Position numbers and translations under genes: made by a program. The notes under the pieces were generated by a model, which saw nothing but the letters and a program-made list of their open reading frames with translations, searched no databases and had not been told where the DNA came from. From NCBI GenBank assembly GCA_011109175.1, contig RDEW01000043.1, positions 124,001 to 188,000 of the forward strand: a stretch of DNA of 64,000 nt, in the 5' to 3' direction. This DNA is from Dicyema japonicum. Its lineage: Eukaryota; Animalia; Dicyemida. Positions 865-63,650 of this stretch are shown here, one piece after another; the first letter of the stretch is position 1; every line of letters starts with the position of its first letter.

Positions 865-1079
865 CGGGCTTGACGAGCGACGCCGTCATCAGTGAACTTC
901 ACTGCGGAACCGGATCGTCAATAAGGACATACACCCAAAAAAAGAAAACAAAGAAGTGAAGAGCATTCCTTGATCCTCCCTCGATTAGCTATTATAACTG
1001 TTCTTTGCTTAAAATAAAGTGTGTCTGCCTGCAGGGAGCGATAACAGATATGGCTCCTTGGAATGTGCGATTATTATTA
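865..1079 (+). mobile_element. SINE family 1, 5'-truncated copy
   Basis: Shares core GGGCTTGACGAGcGACGCCGTCATCAGTG..CACTGCGGAAC, the AAATAAAGTGTGT block and an (ATT)n tail with copies at 19215-19530, 19695-20003 and 44699-45017. Confidence 0.85.
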
Positions 1080-1408
1080 ATGAAATATTTTTTAAGTTGG
1101 CAGTTAGGAGGAGTTTGCGATATGATTTGGGAATTTTCTATAAAATTTGGCGGTTAGTAGGATTTGAAGGTTAAGAAAATTGGCAGTTAGGAGGAGTTTT
1201 ACTGTAATTATCCCAACAACGCTTACGTGAACTTCATTTTTCTGGGTGTTTTCAAGTTCTAGCTTTGTTTTATTTTAGCTCAACGACATAATGAAAGAAG
1301 TTGCTCAGACCAACCAATTAAGTGATAACGGCATTCTTTATGAGGAATCTTGTTATCCTTAAGTTCCCATCGATTTCATGGATTTCCCGTTTTTCTTTTA
1401 AGACTATA

Positions 1409-15830: not shown

Positions 15831-17149
15831 TAGTTTGATGTTTTCAGAACCAAATTAGTCCTTGAGAAATGAAAATTAAAAGATTGTCATTTTCAATTGG
15901 AAACTATTCGACTTTACTAATTTCTCGTGAAAAATCTATTATTCAATAATTCTCCTGTGCATGGTGTTCATTACACGGTGATCTGCGGTTTTTTGTTCAT
16001 AACGAGTTTTTATGGTCTCAAGGAAGGAAGTTAAGAGTTCAGCTGGGACGTGTCGGGATTGGAGATTTGGTCTTTACTCGTGAAATAGTGAAGCACTTAT
16101 TTTTCCTGACGAAGGATTGTATTTATTATGTAATATCTCGGAAGATGAGGGGGTTGTTGTTGATTTCCTTTCTAAGAGGGTGATATTTGGGTTTGTATGA
16201 TTTGAAACTCCAATTTACTGGTCGCAAAAATCGCTATTCTTAAAGTTGAAACTTTAGGGAAAACTTAATTGACTACAATTAAAGGATTCTTGTGCCATCT
16301 GTTAGCGGTATCTCGAAATTAAGTGTAGTTATTGTCTAATCTGCAGAAATTAAGTTATTATAAAGTAAACAGTGCTAATTAAGTTATGGGGAAGTAACAT
16401 GAAACGTTAGGGCTTGCCTACCGACTTCTACCAAGAAAGTCTCCCCAAGATTCAACAAACACAGGGTTATAAGTTCCAGATTTTTAGTGCGGTTTTTGAA
16501 ACTTCGAATAAGATTCTCTATAGTTCCGCCAACCTTGCACAGTTTTACCTTCAACCATGGGGAAATCGGCATACGAGGATTTCTCTCGTAAGCAAGTTTA
16601 GAGCAAACCGCGTTTTCTCAAATTTCTTGAAGTCTCTTCTTTTCGAGGATTACCATTTTTCCAAATCATATAACATTCGATGAATCTTCAAAAAGAGAGT
16701 TTAATTCTGTTTGTTATTCACAATTTTGCTAAGATTATTCGAGTATTGAATAATCTTGTTGTTTGCTTCAGAAATAAATTTCCTGGGCACCTTTATTGTG
16801 CCTCACTCAAGACAGAAATCGATTTTCAGAAGACCACGGTGAGTCATTAGAAAAGGTAGAAAAAATTGAGAACCTTACACACAAGATGTTGTACGGGATA
16901 AGATGTGGACATCACTAAAATATCAGCTCATACCTTTATAAGATTGGGTCTACAAAAAACCAAAGAGACAACAGAACATTTACTCTTCTATAAGGGCTTT
17001 CTTTGGTTCATCGGGTTCTCATCGAAAAAAATGTTGACCGGACGCTTAGTTAGCTAGGTAAATGTACCTCCACGTTACCTATAAGCATATTAATACTTAG
17101 GGTTCGGCTTGTGTGTACTCCTAACTATCCGTTCAACCAGTTTTCTCCA

Positions 17150-18880
17150 CGAAACTTTCCTCCACGCACGTCTCCGCAGTTTATCTTTGTATCGTTCCAA
17201 AAAGGTCTCTTGTTTAGTGTTCAAAGCGAGCGTAACTATCTGGAGTACCAGCTTGCCTTTCACAGGGCGGAGTTGTCTATACTAGACAATCATACTCTCC
17301 AAGGTCTTCTTTAGTGATAATGATTGATTATGAGCACATGTCCCCTCGCTGTATATTCTGAAAAGTAAGATATCACCAGACCATCCAAAGTGAGGACTAT
17401 TGGGACAACCTTTACATACGAATGGTGAATTAACCCCAATTCTTTAAACAAAAAGTCCTATTTTCTAAATTTCTCCGATTCAACTTGTAAATTTTCTGAC
17501 GATGTTACTCCCACTCCAACAAGGAATATAATACCGTTCTCTTAGTGTCGACGACTATTGAATAATAAATGTCTTTAAAAATTAATGGTGTCCACCTTGG
17601 GTCCTTTAAAAATTAATAATGTCCACCTGTCCGCCTTATTTCGACAGTCATAACCAGTTTTCACGAGTGAGCCCGTTCCTTAAACCAAACTCTCGAAAAT
17701 AAAAATTTAGACATCGCACAGTGTCATTGTGCCTCGTACGTAGTCGCTATGAGACTTGAACTATTCATTTTGAATGTGAAATGTTATTGTGCCATATTGA
17801 TCAACATTCCTCTTCCATTTCTTGCAGAACCCACAAACAGAATTACGTTCCGCAAAGAAAAATTTCTGTCCTGAATTGGACAATATAAGGCTTCAGAGCG
17901 TGGAGAATTATTTCCATTTAAAAAAAACAGTGATAAGAGTTTATAATATTCACATATCTCTCCCCCAAATTTTGTATAGGATAGAGTGGAGACTCTTATT
18001 TATTTGGTCTAAGACTAGTTCGAGTTGTAGATCACTTAGCGTCCTAATATCCAATTCAATAGTGAGACACAGTATTCATACCGAAAATATTCTTCTAGCC
18101 AAATGAGTTTTCCGTGAAATTTCGGCCTGAAGAATTGTGATACTCCCGTTACATGCCACAATCCTGTTCTTTAAATCAAGAATAACCACTTAAAGCATTT
18201 TCTCGCTCATAAAAGACAGGGATCGTAGACTTTTCCAAGAGCAAGATATAAATCTTTGTTTATTTGCTTGTTTAATCTTTACTCGATCTTTGAGTAGTTT
18301 TGACTGAGTTACTGCATCAACCATTCCACATGTCCGGCAGAGTAATAGAGTGCATATTCAATTAGTGCCCTGAAGAAGGACCCCCAATACACCCATACAT
18401 TTATATCCGTCAATTTTATCTAACAGTCTACTTTTGATAATAAAACTGAATTGGTGGCTGATCATTCCAAATTTTCATCTTCCATTATTTTCACAATAAA
18501 ATCTTTGTTATTCTGTACAGGTTTCAGATCGTCCATAGAAAAAAGGTGGTTGGTCGAGAATGAAATACCGATTGATCTTCATTTAAGATTGAAAATTTTG
18601 GCTATTTGCGGAAAGGAATCTGCTTCTGGGTCAAGAACTAACACAAAAAGTGAAGGGGGAAAGACTATCCCCCTGCAGAAACCCTCTTTCAGTACAAACA
18701 TCACAAACATCTTCATTATTTAATTTAAGCCTCACTTTCCACCTTGAAATGAGAGAGTTTATGATAACAACAATCCATTGATGAATTCTTGGTTTTTCAA
18801 GGATCTCCGTTAGAAAAATTATGATCCACGGAGTCGAAAGTTGTTTGACGTCAACATGCAGCGAACAGTCTATTTTTATT
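17150..18880 (-). mobile_element. R4/Dong-like RLE retrotransposon, decayed
   Basis: DVKQ.FDSVDH, RGFLQGDSLSP, MDDLK (RT; 18400-18870) and VGVTS...YVKVVPIVLTLDGLV (RLE; 17370-17520). Confidence 0.75.
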
Positions 18881-19195: not shown

Positions 19196-19214
19196 GCCTT
19201 CATATATATAAATA

Positions 19215-19530
19215 ATAATTTAATAATTAAGCACTACCGCGTTGCCATAAGCATGTAAGATGGTTTCGCTCGTGCAGAACACACACTTTATTTAAGTAAA
19301 GTTATTATAACTAATCGTAGAGGGAGAATCAAGGAATGCTCTTCACTTCTTTGTTTTTTCTTTTTTTTGTGTGTATGTCCCTTTCACTATCCAGTTCCGC
19401 AGTGAATCTCCACTGATGACGGCGTCACTCGTCAAGCCCTTTCCGCATCGTAGATGCGTGGAACCTTCCACCAGGTGAACAGCAGCGAGAATCGAACCCG
19501 TGACCTAAGCCACTTTAGCCCGACTCCCTG
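19215..19530 (-). mobile_element. SINE family 1 copy with an alternative RTE-type tail
   Basis: B box GGGTTCGATTCTC, family-1 core, tail CATGCTTATGGCAACGCGGTAGTGCTTAATTATTAAATTATTATT. Confidence 0.9.
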
Positions 19531-19694: not shown

Positions 19695-20003
19695 TGGATA
19701 AGTGTAAAGAGTTCCGGACAAAAAACCTAATGGCATATAGTTCGAATCTCGTTGCTGAAGGTTAGGTTCACGCATCTACGATGTCTTGGTTTTACAAGTC
19801 ACGTCGTCACCATTGAACACCTCACTGCGGAACCGGATCTTCTATAGAGGACTCACACCTAAAAAAGTAAAAAGAGGTGAATAGAACTTTTGGGTCTTCC
19901 TCTACGATTAGATTGCAACGTGTTCTTTACTTAAAAATAAAGTGTGTGTCCTGCCCGGGAAGAGCGATAGCTTATATGACTCTGTAAAGTGTAGCTTTAT
20001 TAT
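19695..20003 (+). mobile_element. SINE family 1 copy (diverged), head-to-head with the previous copy
   Basis: GTTCGAATCTCGTTGCTG, CACGCATCTACGATG, CACTGCGGAACCGGAT, AAATAAAGTGTGTGTCCTGCC, TTATTAT tail. Confidence 0.85.
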
Positions 20004-29069: not shown

Positions 29070-29212
29070 ATATACTTCGATGAATTGCGGAGACGTGCGA
29101 GGATGAAAGTTACATGGAGAAATCTGGTAGAACGGATAGTGAAGAGCATCGCACAGGTGGAACCCTAAGTATTCATATGCTTATGGGTAACGCGGGAGTG
29201 CACTTAACTAAT
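29070..29212 (+). mobile_element. RTE-like element, extreme 3' end
   Basis: RARMKVTWRNLVERIVKSIAQVEP* followed by UTR ...GGGAGTGCACTTAACTAATTAAC, like the other RTE termini (32225, 48190, 63620). Confidence 0.65.
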
Positions 29213-29227
29213 TAACTTTTTTACACA

Positions 29228-43619: not shown

Positions 43620-45862
43620 CATTTAAATGTGGAATATATACAAATTATGGCCACTAATGTGAATTGGTATTTAATGGCCGAGTACTTCTGGATCTCACCG
43701 ATTCTGCTGCGTTGGCCGCAGATCCAGGTTTCTGAGCAGATCTCAGAAGGAGCCAAGTGGAGAAGGTATCCACACAGGTTGCATCCCAGACCAATAATTT
43801 TCCGTGTAAATATTGGAAAAGCGTCTTGCAATCTCCACGATCCAGTCCAACAGGATCCAATTAGCTAAGAAGCCTGCTGCCTCGAGGGTTCACAGAATAA
43901 CATTATTCATGCGACGTGACGAGGTGAGTGACCTGCACTCCTTTTGCAAGACAAAGGATATAGTCCTTTGGTATCAACTGTTCCTCTACAACGGCATATA
44001 TGTTTCTGGCAGACGTTAAGTACCAATCGTTGTGCTATTCCGATTCTACAGTCGTCGTCCATAAGATTTCTGAAAGAAGCGCATGAAAATGCGTGGAGCC
44101 ATGCACCACCCCATGTTGTGCAGCAGATAGCAAACAGGCAAGCCGTGTTGGTTCGACTCTTAGTAAAGCTATCAACGATAGCCTTGCAGGAAATTGCGTC
44201 CCATTTGTTCTGATTCGAGAAATCATCCGGTATTGAAAATCCTGCTTACCTCCACCGCAAGCCAGCTTCGTCAAATACAGTGTCCAAGTAAAGTCCAGTA
44301 GGGTGACGTAGGATTTCCCGGACGAGATGACTGCAGCTCGAAAGCAACGATAGGTATGATGGATGGGAGATCTTGAAGGAGGTTTGCATTGTGTCCAACC
44401 CAGTTCGTCAAACGTAAATTCAGTAGTGACAGTATGCCTTAGCGTCTGATCTATACTCAGTAGCAAATCTTGATGTCCAGGCACAGGGAACTCCGCAGTG
44501 CGTATTCCAATTTCGGCAAACATAAGCTCTTTTTCATGAGGAAAAAAGGATGTGTGGAAGTCCAGAATAGCAAGTTTTTTCGTAAAGAGGGAAAGCTCCT
44601 CCGCTTTGGACTCTGGGTGTATCCGTAATTCTGTATTGTTGAGTGGGCATCCAAGAAAATAGACTTGCTCAGGGGGACGACAGATATTCCCGGTAATAAT
44701 AATAACAACAGCCTTTTCATAAGAGCCATAATATTTATAGCTCCGCATAGGCAGGACACACACTTTATTTAAGTAAAGAACAGTTAATTTTAACTAACCG
44801 TAGAACCAAGGAATTATCTTCACTTCTTTTTTTCTTGTGTGTGGGTCCTTTCTAGACAATCCAGTTCCGCAGTGAGTATCCACTGATGACGGCGTCACTC
44901 GTCAATCCCTTTCCGCATTGTAGATGCGTGGAACCTTCTACCAGATGAACAGCAGCAAGAATCGAACCCGTTACCTAAGCCACTTTAGTCCGACACCTAA
45001 CCACTATGCTACCCGGCTCCCGGTAATAGAATGTTAAATATTCCTGCCACGCGGAAGAAATTGTTTTCCATTTATAAAATATTGATAAGTTCAGATTTTT
45101 TATGTTGACCTCAAGGCCGAGATCATGTAAGGCAGGTACAAAGTTCGATAGACTGGTATAAACATTTCTCCATGTCCCTCCAATTGTCGTCATCGAGATA
45201 CCAGAGGTTGAATTCAGTATCGACGGAACGAACGACTTGATCGACCGTCAATGCAAAGAGGAGTGGTCCTAACGGGTCTCCTTGCCGTACTCCGGACTGC
45301 GACTTGATAATTTTATCCCGAACCCAGAGAAGAATTTGATCCGTATGAAAGATTGACAATGGGAATGGGTTCAGGAGCTTGCTTTCTGCTTAATTAAATG
45401 ATAAGATCTCTCTTTAACCAATTGAAAGCATTAGTGATGTCCAGCTTTAATCCCAGACACGGGATTATTTTGGTTTTTTGTGAGAAACAACTCATTGCGT
45501 TCACTGAGGCTTCACATCTGTTACGTACCACTAAACCCAGGTGGATTGGGATAATTCTTCACTGATCCTTGGAGAGACAAGCCTGGAAGCAATTTTTGCA
45601 GCCAATCTTCGGAAATAGTTGCCAGCTGCAATGGAATGGGCGCCTCTATCACTTTTTTTGAAATCCAGTAGGTGGGCAGAGAAGGTCCCGTGCATGGAAT
45701 ATCCCCATTGATTATACGGTAGATAAAATTAGTGATCGAGTTGACGAGATTATGTACAGCTTCAGCTGTAGGACAAGACGACAGATCCTTGATATTGCCC
45801 TGACGTAGTCCATCCAGTCCTCCGCTGTTACTGGAAGCAAACAATGTAATCGAGACTCTCAT
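43620..45862 (-). mobile_element. CRE-like element, RT to 3' end, interrupted by a SINE
   Basis: SGGLDGLRQG, SGVRQGDPLGPLLFAL, WYLDDD, LPKLEYALRS, DRGDCK/LVWDATCVDT. Confidence 0.9.
44699..45017 (-). mobile_element. SINE family 1, full length (319 bp) with an 11-bp TSD
   Basis: TSD TCCCGGTAATA at 44688-44698 and 45018-45028. Removing it restores CRE frame NILLPGISVVPLSK. Head GCCGGGTAGCATAGTGGTTAGG (A box)...GGGTTCGATTC (B box); tail (TTA)n. Confidence 0.95.
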
Positions 45863-48243
45863 GGAGAAAACCGAAACGAAATCATCAGTACGAACTCTTT
45901 GGGATCAAACAAAGCAGATAATCTCCAAATCTGCTGATATATGCATTGGAGCTCGATATCATCACGCCCTAAAATTTGATCACCACCCGATCGTGCTAGA
46001 CATGGCAAAGCATTGCAGAGAACTAAGGCTAAAAGCGGCAGACACGTCAGACGAGAGTATAAAAAAGAGCTTAAAATCCAACAAAGGGAATTAAAATGGA
46101 AAATCAAAAAGATGAACAGATAACATTCACGGAAAATTATTACATCCCTATTAAAAGATGTGGAATGCCTAAAGGACAATTCAAGGATGTTTGCGGCTGC
46201 TGTGGACAAAGAAAGGACAAAACGTCCTTCACATCAAAGATACAGAAGGAAAATTCGTGGGTAATCCAGAAGAAAAAGCAGAATTAATTGCACGTCACTT
46301 TGAAATGTTGCTGAATATAGACAATTAGGAATTTCCTCTATTCCAGGGAGTACTGAGGGCATTAATGAATGCCATCCCAGTGGAAGAAGTTGAATCAGCT
46401 CTAAATAAACTGAAGAATAACAAGAGTGCTGGACCAGACAACATAAGCCCTGAGCTATTAAAATATGGGCCAAAAAAGTTAGTGAAACAATTGCAAAAAC
46501 CCTAAGTGACAGCTTTGAAACTAATACCGATCTAGGACTTGGAAATGGATTATTAATATACATACAAAAACCGAATAAAGCAAAAGGACCAGTAGATAAT
46601 CTCCGCCCGATCATACTTCTGAACTCGATACGCAAGGTGCTGCCAAACATTGCACTACGTCGGATAAAGGGTGTGGCGGTTCCATACATACCAGCAAGTC
46701 AAAGTGGGTTCCGAGAAGGGAGGTCTACAGCGGACATTGTATGGAGCCATAGATGGCGCTGTGGCAAAGAAAAGAGCGCAACGACCGTTTTGGGAATAGA
46801 TCTCTCCAGAGTTTTGACTCAATAACCAGACAGAAACTGATGACTGTGTTTGAGCAAATATTGGATTAATCGTCAGTTAAGATAATCAGACTACTACTTG
46901 CGAACACAAGACTATCTGTGAGGACAGAAGGAGCAACTTCCCGCAGTTTCAAAACAACGATTGGGACACCTCAGGGTGATTCCCTCTCCCTTTACTATTC
47001 ACCATATACCTTGATTCTGCCGTAAATGCTATATAGGAGACATAGAAGAGACATCGTATGCGGATGATGTGGATTTTGTATCACGGGACGCGACCGCAAT
47101 CCAACACCTACTATAAAGTGCACCTGCGGAGCTTGAGAAATGGTTTCTCAGCGTAAATGTAAACAAAACTGAAATTACTGAAATCAAAAGAGAAGACGAT
47201 ATTACTCATGAAAGATGGAGATGTACTAATAAGCTCGGCTCTCTACTAGGAGACGCTGAAGATGTACTAAAAAACACTGGCAAATGCGGCAATGGCTAAA
47301 CTGAGGAAAGGATGGTTAAGAGCCAAAGGACTTGGAATTGACATCAGATGCAGGCTTTACAACGCCTTTGTGAAACCGATCCTACTGTACAACGCATGGA
47401 TATGGGAATGTTCCTTCAACGAACTATTGAAACTGGATTCGTTCCATAGAAGGCAACTAAGAAGCTTACTCGGAATGGAGTGGCCATCAACAGTGGTATT
47501 TACAACAAGTGTATGTGTTCGTACATCAACAAGGATGTGATAGATGCCTGGTGGAGGCTATTTGGACATGCATTAAGAATGAACCCGGACGCACCCGCTA
47601 ACAAAGCGATGGAAGATTACTTTGACAGTTGCGACAAACCCTTCTGCGGACCACCTAGATCGACACTTCCGACTGCCATAAACAAAGATATAAATCGCGT
47701 GAGAAAAAATCTAAAGACGGGGGACTTTCGACATAGGAAGATGGAAGAGATTAACGCTAAATATTAATTCTATGAGTGTTGAGATCACTAACATTGTTGA
47801 GATCACTAACGAATTGAGATCACTAACATTCGACAGGGGAAGATGGAAGAGATTAACGCTAAATATTGATTCTATGAGTGTTGAGATCACTAACATTGTT
47901 GAGATCACTAACGAATTGAGATCACTAACATTCGACAGAGGAAGATGGAAGAGATTAACGCTAAATATTGATTCTATGAGTGGTTGAATCCACTAACATT
48001 GTTGAGATCACTAACGAATTGAGATCACTAACTTTCGACATAGGAAGATGGAAGAGATTAACGCTAAATATTAATTCTATGAGTGTTGAGATCACTAACA
48101 TTGTTGAGATCACTAACGAATTGAGATCACTAACATTCGACAGAGGAAGATGGAAGAGATTAACGCTAAATATTGATTCTATGAGTGTTGCACATGCGGG
48201 GCTATAAACATTTTGGCTTTCCTGAAAGTGCCTCAATAATAAT
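45861..48243 (+). mobile_element. RTE-like element, 5'-truncated and decayed
   Basis: KNNKSAGPD, LRPIILLNSIRK, QSGFREGRST, GTPQGDSLS, YADD, KLGSLL, RLYNAFVKPILLYN, WRLFGHALRM; (TAA)n tail. Confidence 0.9.
47725..48190 (+). repeat. Tandem repeat, 102-bp period, ~4.6 units, made from the RTE C-terminal coding segment
   Basis: GAAGATGGAAGAGATTAACGC starts at 47737, 47839, 47941, 48044, 48146; each unit holds three TTGAGATCACTAAC subrepeats. Confidence 0.97.
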
Positions 48244-48469
48244 CAATTTTTGACTTTATTGACAAAAATCGCCATACTCATTAGTCTTATCAAATTCACA
48301 GTTCGATATGAGTGCATCGTCGATGAGTGAAGATAGACATGAAACGGCAGAGATCCGGACGTCCTTCGGAATCCTCAGTGGTATTTTCTTTGACTTTCGC
48401 AGGCTGGATATGTTTAAGAGGACAGAGTTGGATACCCGTTAAGGGGCAGATTCCTATACGTGTGCACAT

Positions 48470-60629: not shown

Positions 60630-63600
60630 TTGGTTGAGCTGGTGACGTGGCTCTTGATCTCAATGTCTGGAAAACACAGTTTCAAGTCATCGGACTTCTC
60701 CCTTCTCACGTTTAACGTCAGGGGACTCTCTAGCGTTTGGAAACGGAAGGAACTGGTCGAGGATCTTTCAAAATACAAGTTTCAATCGCCTGCCTTCAGG
60801 AGACCAAACTTATAAACGGGATCGAAGAACAACATGGGAACTTCCGACTAATCTTCCTTCCAGGTGGAAACAAGCACTATGGGCTAGGATTTGCGTCAGG
60901 AAAGATCTATCCAGGAGAGTCTGCCGATGTTACAATGTGAATGATAGAATCGGGGTGTTGCGATTGAAACTGGATGACCTCAACCCGTCGAAGAAATATC
61001 TAACTATAATAAACGTGTACGCCCCTCATAGTGGATGGCTTAATAAAAACCCTGATGAGATTGATGACTTTTACACCAGTCTTTCTGCCGTTTTCTCCAA
61101 GTATGCTCTCTCAACATTAGTAATGATCGCAGGAGACCTAAATGCGAAAGCTGGCACCCAGGTTACGACCGATGAGACATTCATGGGAAGGCATGGTAGG
61201 GGGAAAAGAAATCTCCCGGGAACTCTACTAGCTAACTTCTGTCAAACGAACAACCTATTTTTATGCAATACAGCCTTCATGCATCCAGCCAGACATAAAT
61301 CTACGTGGTCGGGACACAGAACAAACCCGAAGGGCGAGTGATAAATATGTACAACCAGATCGACTATATCATATGCAGGCAAAAAGATCGAGGAATTATA
61401 CTTGATGCACGAGCTTATGGTGGATCGATTATCGACAGCGACCACAAAATGGTTATTGCTAGACTTTCTCTAAAGAGATTTATGGTACTACAAAGAACGA
61501 AACGGAAGCACATTGAAACCACAGAACCCAACTATAGACGTTATAATCTGGAATCCTTAATCAGTCAATCAGAAGGGGCCCTAGAATTCAAAGAATATCT
61601 GGATGCAGAACTAGAAAACATGCCTACAGATTTGCCGCCCGGAAAATCCTGGGATTTTGTAAAGCACTCAATACATAAAGGAGCCAATCTGCATCTATTG
61701 AAAGAAAATGAGAAAACCCCATCGCACAATGAAATTTACACGGTGAAGGACCTTGCCAATAAACAGAAGACCATATGGATGCTATATCAAAATACTGACG
61801 ATTCGAACGTAAAATCAAAATTGCGGCTAGAAAGAAAAACTATCAAAGCAAAAATAAGAAAAACTATACGCCAGCATAACAGAAATAAAGCACTGGACCA
61901 GATTAAGAAGATAGAATCTCTCAAGGACAACGCTAGATTTTACGAGGCTGTGAAACAGATGAAAGGAAATAGAGCCCATCAACCGATAATGATAAGAGAT
62001 GACAAAGGAACGCAAATTGTGGACCAAATGGAAGTGGCTGAAATTATCGCTGCCCACTTTGGAAAACTTTTTGACCCAAGGAACGACACTATCAACCTAG
62101 AACGAGGAAAATTGGACGAGGAAATCACACCATATGAAGTTGAACTTGCGAGTTCCAAGTTGAAAAACAACAGGACTCCTGGCCCCGACGGACTCGCTGG
62201 TGAATTCTTCAAATATGGAACCCAAAAGCTGTATGAATGCATCGCTAGGATCCTGAATGAAATGTACTATTATGGTCACACGCTGACCCTGGGAGAGGGT
62301 ATCTTGATACCTGTACATAAGGCGAATAAACCAAGATCTAAGGTGGAGAACCTCCGTCCGGTCATATTAATGAATTCACTTCGGAAAATTCTGGCGAACA
62401 TAACATTACAAAGGATGGAAGGACGCCTAGATACTTTTCTGTCGCCATACCACAGCGGATTCCGAAAAGGAAGATCTACTTCCGATGTTTTGTGGTCCCA
62501 CAAGTGGAGATCTGCGGCCGTTCAAAAGTTCAAAATGTCTACAACCATCCTCGGAATCGACATTTCGAGGGCCTTCGACTCTGTCGACAGACGGAGGCTA
62601 ATACTGGTTTTGGAAAGTTTCCTAGACGCTTCACTGTCAGAATGGCCACCACCCTCCTAGCTGATACTTGGCTCACTGTAAGAGTCGGGGGAGCCTTGTC
62701 TCGCCGATTTGAGACGACTGTTGGCACTCCACAGGGAGACCCATTATCACCTATACTTTTTGTCATATACCTTGAAGCTGCTTTACGGGAGTCAAAACCG
62801 ATAATGGGTGAAAAGACAAACATTATTGCGTATGCTGACGACGTAGACTTTATTTCAAATGACAAAATACCGCTCACCCGCTTGATGGAAGAAGTGTCTG
62901 GAAGACTAGCCGAATGGTTCCTAACAGTAAATCCGGACAAGACTGACGTAACTGAACTCAAGAGGGAAGAAACAAGGACGGAGGAGTACTGGCGCAAATG
63001 CAAAAAGCTTGGCTCCCTCCTAGGAGACCATGAAGAAATTACGAGAAGGAAAACCCTAGCACAAACTGCCCTCTCCAGATTAAAGAACATCTGGCTTCAC
63101 AAAAAGGGCCTTGACATTATAACAAAAACTCGATTATACAACTCGCTAGTGAAACCCATACTACTATATAACGCTGGTACCTGGGCCTGCTCAAGAAATG
63201 AACTGAAGAGGCTTAATGCGTTTCATAGAGACCAACTACGGCATATGATGTTCGAAAGAAGTGATACGAGGATGTCATCTAATCTTCTCTATAAGAGGAC
63301 GAAGACCTCAGAAATTTCTAATGAGATTCTGGATACACGATGGAGGCTTTTCGGCCATATTCTGCGACTGGACCTAGATGCCCCCGCGAACGTAGCCATG
63401 GAGGATTACTTCATGTTGGAGGCCCCCCGTTTCCGTGGTCGCCCAAGGACGACACTGGCAGTCGTTCTCGACGAGGACCTCAAAGAAATGGGACGGCATC
63501 TTGCAAGTGGAGAGGATCTGGACTGGTTGCGCGCTGCGGCTTTGAATAGGAGGAAGTGGATGAAACTAACCAGTGATTTGCTAACTCGTGTTGCACATGC

Positions 63601-63650
63601 TTTGTCAAGTCCTATGACATAGCGATAAGTGCTTAAATAATAATAATTTC
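60630..63650 (+). mobile_element. RTE-like element, near full length (APE plus RT), about 4 frameshifts
   Basis: TFNVRGL, ACLQET, INVYAPH, AGDLNAK, NQIDYI, SDH; RT TPGPDG, RPVILMNS, GTPQGDPLSPILF, YADD; (TAA)n tail at 63637-63648. Confidence 0.95.

Follow-up and report, generated by a model that had tools for sequence, protein, structure and literature searches.

Probable exchange of a LINE-derived 3' hairpin in a SINE subfamily of Dicyema japonicum

The window, a stretch of 64,000 nucleotides (scaffold C316:124001-188000), contains several SINE copies of one family together with 3' fragments and longer copies of RTE-type LINEs (Table 1). An Rfam scan of the window recovered two true tRNA genes and nothing else. 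The genome of D. japonicum measures 67.5 Mb in 377 scaffolds and consists for 49% of repeats; SINEs are not described in the genome paper (PMC6736024). The assembly searched here counts 67,542,437 bases in the same 377 scaffolds. In total, 92 loci were read, while the other genome-wide figures are pattern counts, to be taken as exact-motif lower bounds. Majority consensuses were made for the SINE subfamilies (~330 bp) and for one non-autonomous RTE fragment (294 bp), those of subfamilies A and B being derived from aligned copies, 30 of A and 30 of B. Few sequences were available for each of the lineages C, D, A-prime and RB.

Table 1. Position of the SINE and RTE features in the window
Feature	Position	Strand	Details
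5'-truncated SINE copy, D-type tail	865..1085	+	identity to consensus B: body 0.82, tail 0.73
Second RTE-A-lineage 3' fragment	17048..17192	-	inverted repeats I3, I4 with 29072-29217
SINE subfamily A copy	19205..19528	-	nhmmer score 346; tRNA-like head, body, RTE-A-type tail, TTA-rich microsatellite
RTE-A-type 3' hairpin, P1 GCAC strand to GTGC strand (presumed swapped module)	19227..19275	-	three-part fold resembling that of RTE-A ends
GCAC at the junction, present at the end of the SINE body and in all RTE tails	19272..19275	-	candidate exchange microhomology
Old SINE copy, C-type tail	19695..19995	+	identity to consensus B: body 0.75, tail 0.64
RTE-A-lineage 3' end, 5'-truncated	29074..29217	+	last ~30 codons, stop 29166-29168, hairpin 29151-29201, TAAC-type repeat
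SINE subfamily B copy, full length, RB-type tail	44699..45021	-	11-bp target-site duplication TATTACCGGGA
RB1-lineage RTE copy, 5'-truncated near 46170	46173..48245	+	RVT_1 46454-46822, hairpin 48190-48231, (AAT)n
Nearly full-length RTE-type LINE, ~3.0 kb	60658..63650	+	endonuclease, RT, ~35-nt 3' UTR with hairpin GCAC...GTGC, (AAT)n

The SINE is a non-coding element of ~325 bp, of which the body takes up ~280 nt, and a first look at the genome yielded ~2300 candidate copies. With TRGCNNAGTGG (box A) and GGTTCGANNCC (box B) at the 5' end as criteria for a Pol III promoter, the consensus of 60 copies displays box A TGGCATAGTGG and box B GGTTCGATTCT, situated ~40 nt apart. ARAGORN found no tRNA in the SINE heads, and a full-length copy (44680-45040) had no Rfam match at E≤1, neither a tRNA nor a ribozyme. 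The promoter boxes suggest that the head is derived from a tRNA and probably too diverged for the tRNA models. At the 3' end, the SINE resembles LINEs that reside in the same genome: consensus A matches the RTE-A lineage (z 13.5) and consensus B the RB1 lineage (z 9.5).

The LINEs that supply these tails fit the RTE clade, a name which we base on their architecture, their tiny UTRs and their microsatellite ends. An element of this clade is expected to have a single ORF with an APE-type endonuclease and then a reverse transcriptase (RT), no ORF1 and a length of ~3-3.3 kb; the nearly full-length element of the window agrees with this at ~3.0 kb, and RB1 contains RVT_1. The UTRs measure ~30-45 nt, with (AAT)n, (ATT)n or (TAAC)n behind them. 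Malik and Eickbush reportedly described in 1998 that the 3' UTR of RTE elements is very short and terminates with short tandem repeats and not with poly(A). The microsatellite tails of RTE elements have also been noted more recently (PMC5786205). In the nearly full-length element of the window, the endonuclease was detected as Exo_endo_phos_2 with an E-value of 5e-4 (below the Pfam cut-off) and the RT as two RVT_1 halves (8e-10 and 1e-16). One frameshift separates its open frames of 453 and 426 aa, and its tail is another variant, GCACATGCTTTGTC...GATAAGTGC, followed by (AAT)n.

An RT query on the genome (150 hits) revealed three discrete classes with ~82%, 67% and 60% identity to the window copy. 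Within each class the scores of many copies are identical, and the longest open frame measures 984 aa, which suggests that several RTE lineages were recently active in this 67.5-Mb genome. Tail positions tie the ~82% class to RB1, whose tails follow it at a distance of 1.05-1.3 kb, and one copy of the ~67% class to RB2, a tail of which (L036) is situated 1 kb further downstream. None of the RTE-A-type tails could be linked to any of the 150 RT hits. No endonuclease domain was detected on either strand between 45030 and 46300, beside the RB1 copy of the window. The end of the ORF of this RB1 copy (~100 nt), together with the start of its 3' UTR, is present in about five head-to-tail units (47676-48189) just before the tail at 48190. 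These units have a period of 102-103 bp and are 80-100% identical, and other RB1 copies, in the loci L091 and L092, contain one unit. Repeated slippage or re-priming during reverse transcription may have created the array, or a later tandem duplication.

The RTE-A lineage has ~350 first-look candidate 3' ends in the genome, with variable 5' ends. Typically, these copies are short 3' fragments of 125-350 bp. The longer ones mostly start at one point, ~270 bp from the 3' end (at least eight copies). In such ~280-bp units, the start of the APE endonuclease (..TIATFNVRGLASNTK..) continues in frame into ..LDELRRRARRKVTWRKLVERIV.. with the stop codon and the UTR, so that the first ~20 codons (..ATFNVRGL..) are fused to the last ~30. 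Examples are found in L066, L068, L073, L077, L082, L084, L086 and L075/L076 (match from 1501 in the locus), and the family has two deletion variants, which differ in the presence of a 39-bp segment. By their sequence, these units are best described as bipartite non-autonomous RTEs, and the element at 29074-29217 would be a truncated copy. Two other RTE-A copies, L078 and L087, continue into ORF sequence, indicating that truncated full-length elements are present too. Among the RTE-A copies recovered, most of them short or bipartite, there was no autonomous element with an RT. L080 and L088 had been considered as long LINE copies, but the ~1.4 kb they share upstream is a duplicated locus without an RT ORF.

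The tail of the A copy in the window was compared with the RTE 3' ends of the same window. An earlier note, made on the sequence of the window alone, had aligned this tail with 29177-29207 and had judged that match far better than the one with the tail at 48189. The comparison bears this out. The last 110 nt of the A copy align to 29072-29225 with a local score of 40, compared to 16.2 ± 2.4 for dinucleotide shuffles (z 9.9). As 0 of 500 shuffles reach this score, the alignment is real and far beyond chance. The same 110 nt show no match with the tail in 48100-48262 (score 14, z -1.0). On the RTE side the match covers 29151-29216, and the stretch 19254-19227 (minus strand) aligns to 29177-29207. 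The A copy has two private defects: its head has lost ~22 nt and with them box A, and a deletion of 6 nt in the tail shortens the visible match with RTE-A.

The B copy at 44699 has the opposite pattern, with z 10.0 to the tail at 48190 and z 2.3 to 29072-29225. Its proposed use of the 48189 RTE tail was correct as far as the match is concerned, but the RB2 lineage (L075, L037, L056, L036, L002) is closer, with 27 identical nt. The same head and body thus carry two LINE-type tails that look unrelated, as had been proposed, and the cross-comparisons at the consensus level (A with RB, B with RTE-A) are at chance (z ~0).

The chimeric copy at 19205-19528 is not an isolated case. A genome search with the whole copy gave at least 40 scored matches of 88-94% identity, tail included, and these siblings (40 at this identity) span its whole length, from query position 4 to ~310 of 316. 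The 44699 copy likewise has at least 40 full-length siblings of its own. Exact junction patterns were found 51 times for A, spread over many scaffolds, and 145 times for B, with zero matches for the reversed-pattern controls. The junction sequence ...TTCTGCACGAGCGAAACCC... is identical in 51/51 A copies, all of which read ...TTCTGCACGAGCG... or a one-base variant of it. This uniformity indicates that the chimera arose once and was copied afterwards. Direct repeats of at least 9 bp, and up to 18 bp, flank 24 of 50 copies versus 2 of 50 mismatched controls; these target-site duplications of individual copies point to separate retrotranspositions. A one-off chimera or an assembly artefact at the window locus, with the damage to the window copy (short head, 6-nt tail deletion) as its only recommendation, is consequently of negligible probability in view of the 51 junctions, the full-length siblings and their own target-site duplications.

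The anchor of the young body (its last 26 nt) has 654 exact matches in the genome, of which ~18% are of the A type. At a divergence of ~4%, about 35% of the copies retain such exact motifs, which brings subfamily A to roughly 100-350 copies and B to several times more.

Some further features of individual copies were observed. Three SINE-A copies lie 7.2 kb apart (C343:159657, 166947 and 174178) inside segmental or tandem duplications, and the SINE-A pair L015/L019 (C68:993824 and 970509) has identical flanks and represents segmental duplicates. Certain copies of both subfamilies (L051, L055, L057 and L060 for B; L018, L024 and L027 for A) end in an A-run (..CTTTAAAAAA) directly before the target-site duplication and not in (ATT)n. 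Their 3' ends are near 1800-1830 of each locus, and the last few bases of the tail are absent. These A-run ends may reflect an alternative mode of priming or mobilisation by another LINE.

Comparison of the two consensus sequences reveals a mosaic. Head and body of A and B have 253 matches, 14 mismatches and 12 gap columns, versus 27 matches and 27 mismatches in the tail, which corresponds to a difference of 5% against 50% (Fisher test on substitutions, 1.3e-14). Measured in windows of 20 columns, identity amounts to 0.70-1.00 up to column 270 and to 0.40-0.50 thereafter. The break is sharp and located at ...GTGTGTGTTCT|GCAC. The maximum-chi2 breakpoint, ...GTGTGTGTTCTG|CAC (TTCTG|CAC), was reached by 0 of 10,000 permutations. 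The replaced segment comprises the last ~55 bases of SINE-A. The breakpoint indeed lies near the motif to which it had been assigned, just 3' of AAATAAAGTGTG, and the homology with RTE-A begins 11 nt downstream, at GCAC. This tetranucleotide is common to the end of the SINE body (TTCT-GCAC, as in RB2) and to RTE-A (..GGCACAAGCGG). Two bases beyond it, the A sequence already resembles RTE-A, which places the exchange in or next to the GCAC (window 19275-19272).

Divergence of the copies from their own consensus is nearly equal in both parts of the element, 3.9% (body) and 4.0% (tail) for A, and 3.3% and 3.8% for B. Dead copies thus decay equally in body and tail, and a higher mutation rate of the tail cannot explain the contrast between A and B. 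A simple divergence of the tails in step with the cores, named beforehand as the outcome that would speak against swapping, is therefore not what distinguishes A from B. It would require that both tails descend from one captured tail by point mutations and small indels. Such a descent draws on the deep homology of all SINE and RTE tails, which follow one hairpin plan, and on the B, C and D tails, which do diverge in step. It is nevertheless very improbable, as it would have to produce 5% body against 50% tail substitutions with a sharp boundary despite equal neutral decay, and the likeness of the A tail to RTE-A, including an insertion of ~10 nt and unpaired positions, would have to be convergent.

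The specific kinship of the A tail is visible at the level of the consensus. The match of consensus A with the consensus of 24 RTE-A 3' ends extends over 62 columns, starting at GCAC. In a global comparison, 49/66 positions of the A tail are identical to RTE-A versus 36-37/63-65 to RB1, and overall the identity of the SINE-A tail to the RTE-A consensus is ~74-79%. The ~10-nt insertion TTATGG(G)YAA is present in SINE-A and RTE-A and missing from the RB-type tails. A maximum-likelihood tree was built from 107 tails. One of its branches, with a length of 0.36 and a support of 99/97, sets apart 25 RTE-A ends together with 33 SINE-A tails. The SINE types B, C, D and E form one group (100/99), beside RB1 and RB2.

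The body tree (160 columns) has a different topology. Here, the 30 A copies and the 32 B copies form sister groups (92/89), nested within the older C, D and E copies. Separate trees for bodies and tails had been proposed as a check, and they are discordant: the A bodies go with B, and the A tails with RTE-A. The expected grouping of the tails by RTE subfamily is present in the trees, but the AU test taken alone does not reach significance. A topology with all SINE tails together was not rejected (p 0.175, delta lnL 7.9), which also leaves room for descent from one tail, in an alignment of 59 columns that lacks power and treats gaps as missing data, so that the shared insertion was not used. 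Because this alignment is short and blind to indels, the decisive evidence comes from the contrast between body and tail and from the specific similarity, and not from the tree test. Together, they support a grouping of the SINE-A tail with RTE-A, apart from the remaining SINE tails. Body/tail discordance, a discrete breakpoint and an amplified chimera, the marks of a SINE tail exchange, are all present.

All tail types, of SINEs as well as RTEs, can adopt the same fold, consisting of P1 (GCAC/GUGC), P2 (GCG/CGY) and a distal hairpin, which is longer in RTE-A and SINE-A. P1 reads GCAC/GUGC in all RTE lineages and in SINE-A, and GCCU/AGGC in SINE-B. The latter is a double compensatory change by which the stem is kept (44712-44760, minus strand, versus RB2 L075:2783-2834). 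Upstream of GCAC, the SINE body has no significant similarity to RB2, RB1 or RTE-A (z -0.7 to 2.4). It follows that hairpin, LINE-derived module and exchanged segment all begin at the same point, and what was swapped is precisely the 3' hairpin of LINE origin. A resemblance of the SINE body to the ends of RTE ORFs (WR..L.. codons, TAACTGTTCT...) had been considered and was dropped after shuffle tests.

Not every deviating tail results from an exchange. The copies at 865 and 19695 had been presented as carriers of further tail variants, and their tails are indeed different (D- and C-type), but no swap is needed to explain them. Neither copy shows a significant difference between body and tail in its identity to B, and their tails diverge from B no more than their bodies do, as expected for ordinary in-step divergence. 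In general, the older copies have a tail identity of 0.62-0.73 and a body identity of 0.69-0.82 to B (p 0.07-0.86), while in comparison with A the older C and D copies are significantly farther in the tail (p 0.0003-0.03). Since the C and D tails are in step with B and not with A, the RB-type tail is ancestral and the A tail the replacement.

One other sequence combines an RTE-A-like tail with a SINE body. The body of this A-prime copy (L062:2199-2428) is old and D-like (it groups with D, 99/94), and the A-prime tail is known from this one sequence. Approximately eight siblings with the same tail were found (76-85% identity); most other hits end at its breakpoint, query position 147. The identity of A-prime to consensus A is 0.76 for the body and 0.74 for the tail, which amounts to divergence in step. 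Both have GCGAAACC where RTE-A reads GCGGAACC. A single clade of all RTE-A-tailed bodies was not rejected by the AU test (p 0.093), for which 160 columns were available and power is low. There may have been two captures from RTE-A, or one old capture followed by recombination between SINEs, giving rise to A. For the latter, the RTE-A tail would have been captured long ago by A-prime and joined later by a B-like body, through a switch between two SINE RNAs or through ectopic recombination, without any LINE at that step. The in-step divergence, the shared GCGAAACC, the siblings and the AU result all agree with such a history, which we regard as a possible but doubtful origin of A: the SINE-A tail is nearer to the RTE-A consensus than to the single A-prime tail, the body tree joins A with B and not with A-prime, and A-prime was sampled by one sequence.

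The element at 29177 had been taken as the direct LINE partner of the A copy, and in this respect the earlier note does not hold. The RTE-A family has diverged 13% from its consensus and is ~3 times as old as SINE-A (4%), and its tail is 79% identical. On these grounds, the 29177 element is kin of the donor and not the donor itself. Moreover, the family largely consists of bipartite, internally deleted RTE derivatives. Among the sampled RTE-A, no contemporaneous donor or partner of SINE-A was found, and a search for the exact SINE-A tail variant behind the end of an RTE ORF gave none, with 10/10 hits of the RTE-A type.

A candidate may exist among tails of intermediate sequence. The pattern TATGG-N(1-2)-AACGCGG-N(1-3)-AGTGC has 116 matches in the genome. 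Among the 100 matches listed, 51 are of the SINE-A type (..GGT..), 12 of the RTE-A type and 32 intermediate between the two (TATGGCAACGCGG[G/A]AGTGC). Among these listed matches, 5/32 intermediate motifs are anchored in a SINE versus 27/51 of the SINE-A type (p 0.001). Intermediate motifs are located, for example, at C1:559402(-), C1:2291201(+), C24:1378230(-) and C46:1113733(-). This population may represent the true donor lineage.

Taken together, subfamily A is quite likely a chimera, with a young body that is sister to B and a 3' hairpin of the RTE-A lineage from GCAC onwards. Template switching by the RT is the mechanism usually invoked for module exchange between SINEs (PMC4758252, PMC5786205). 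In the most likely scenario for SINE-A, reverse transcription would have started on an RNA of the RTE-A type and jumped to the SINE RNA at the GCAC, the base of the hairpin. The hairpin with its terminal microsatellite would be the expected recognition target of an RTE reverse transcriptase, presumably that of an RTE-A sublineage, and by this recognition the chimera would be copied through target-primed reverse transcription, spreading to the roughly 100-350 copies estimated above. It is conceivable, on a tentative reading, that the GCAC at the base of P1 is a preferred site for recurrent template switches, used at least twice (A-prime and A), by which cassettes tied to different RTEs are acquired.

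An event at the DNA level would leave a product that is indistinguishable in sequence from that of an RNA template switch. A heavily 5'-truncated RTE-A insertion in the tail of a source SINE or beside it, joining by GCAC microhomology, or gene conversion of a source SINE by an RTE-A fragment in its vicinity might have removed the old tail, after which the repaired locus acted as the new source gene. The usual shortness of RTE-A copies, the occurrence of SINE and RTE fragments no more than a few kb apart in the window, and the homology of SINE and RTE tails around GCAC(A/G)(A/T)GCG would all favour joining or conversion. Such an event would, however, have to strike a transcriptionally active source copy exactly at the base of the hairpin, and the 60 copies read included no source locus in which remnants of both tails persist, so that we rate this origin as unlikely. 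The earlier note saw one Pol III head switching between LINE partners by tail swapping. The swap applies to subfamily A and not to the other variants, and since A and B have a similar age, the two RTE lineages would have been used side by side, without abandonment of one. The partners are thus concurrent rather than successive.

Earlier work on the exchange of SINE modules is attributed to Gilbert and Labuda, Ogiwara, Nishihara, and Kramerov and Vassetzky. Exchange of tails or shuffling of modules is known in CORE-, V-, Deu-, Ceph- and mollusc SINEs (PMC4758252; PMC5786205), and the "occasional tail exchange of SINEs" has been mentioned as such (PMC5786205). Tail exchange is therefore already documented elsewhere, and Dicyema SINE-A is a new instance. 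As in the known cases, one head and body is found with different LINE tails, and the new subfamily was amplified. Unlike those cases, both partners in Dicyema are RTE lineages of one genome, the old and the new tail are homologous, the exchange maps to four nucleotides at the base of a hairpin, and the host is a dicyemid.

tRNA-derived SINEs with RTE tails include Bov-tA (with Bov-B), AfroSINE, Ped-1/2 and HaSE1 (PMC5786205). Like these, the Dicyema SINE joins a tRNA-like Pol III head to a body of unknown origin, and its short tail, in common with RTE 3' ends, runs out into a microsatellite and not into poly(A). It differs from them in that no body segment derived from an RTE 5' UTR was detected and in the strong divergence of its head from tRNA models. 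The bipartite RTE-A units, with their 5' and 3' LINE parts in mostly ~280 bp, have counterparts in the non-autonomous RTESINE1/2, WALLSI3, Bov-A and MAR4, for which RIME/Ingi is an analogue (PMC5786205). In contrast to the RTESINE1/2 type, a matching full-length RTE-A was not recovered and two deletion variants coexist. The closest parallel for the hairpin is the stringent-type LINE/SINE pair UnaL2/UnaSINE1 of the eel, where the RT recognises a 3' stem-loop (Kajikawa and Okada 2002, as cited in PMC4758252 and PMC5786205). Both systems have a conserved 3' hairpin with tandem repeats in LINE and SINE, and compensatory changes in the stem. The eel pair belongs to the L2 clade and has been studied by experiment, whereas recognition in Dicyema is suggested by conservation.

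The present case is a well-resolved SINE module exchange, in which the breakpoint, the microhomology, the copy numbers, the ages and the hairpin are defined. It also concerns a repeat fraction, 49% of 67.5 Mb, that was so far uncharacterised. It cautions that a different tail is not always a swap: four types of tail occur on the one body, and an exchange is required for the RTE-A type alone. The annotation of Dicyema SINEs should treat body and tail as separate criteria, and the ~280-bp RTE-A units should be treated as bipartite non-autonomous LINEs, not as SINEs or truncated copies. To our knowledge, the specificity of RTE reverse transcriptases for their tails has not been determined experimentally for this clade. 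Together with the RTE lineages that have long open frames, the A/B pair could be used to test which RNA features are recognised by RTE reverse transcriptases. If the hairpin cassettes of A and B are each tied to a different RTE lineage and the GCAC is a recurrent switch site, one Pol III head could parasitise several co-resident RTE lineages at once, and A and B would be a natural minimal pair for this specificity.
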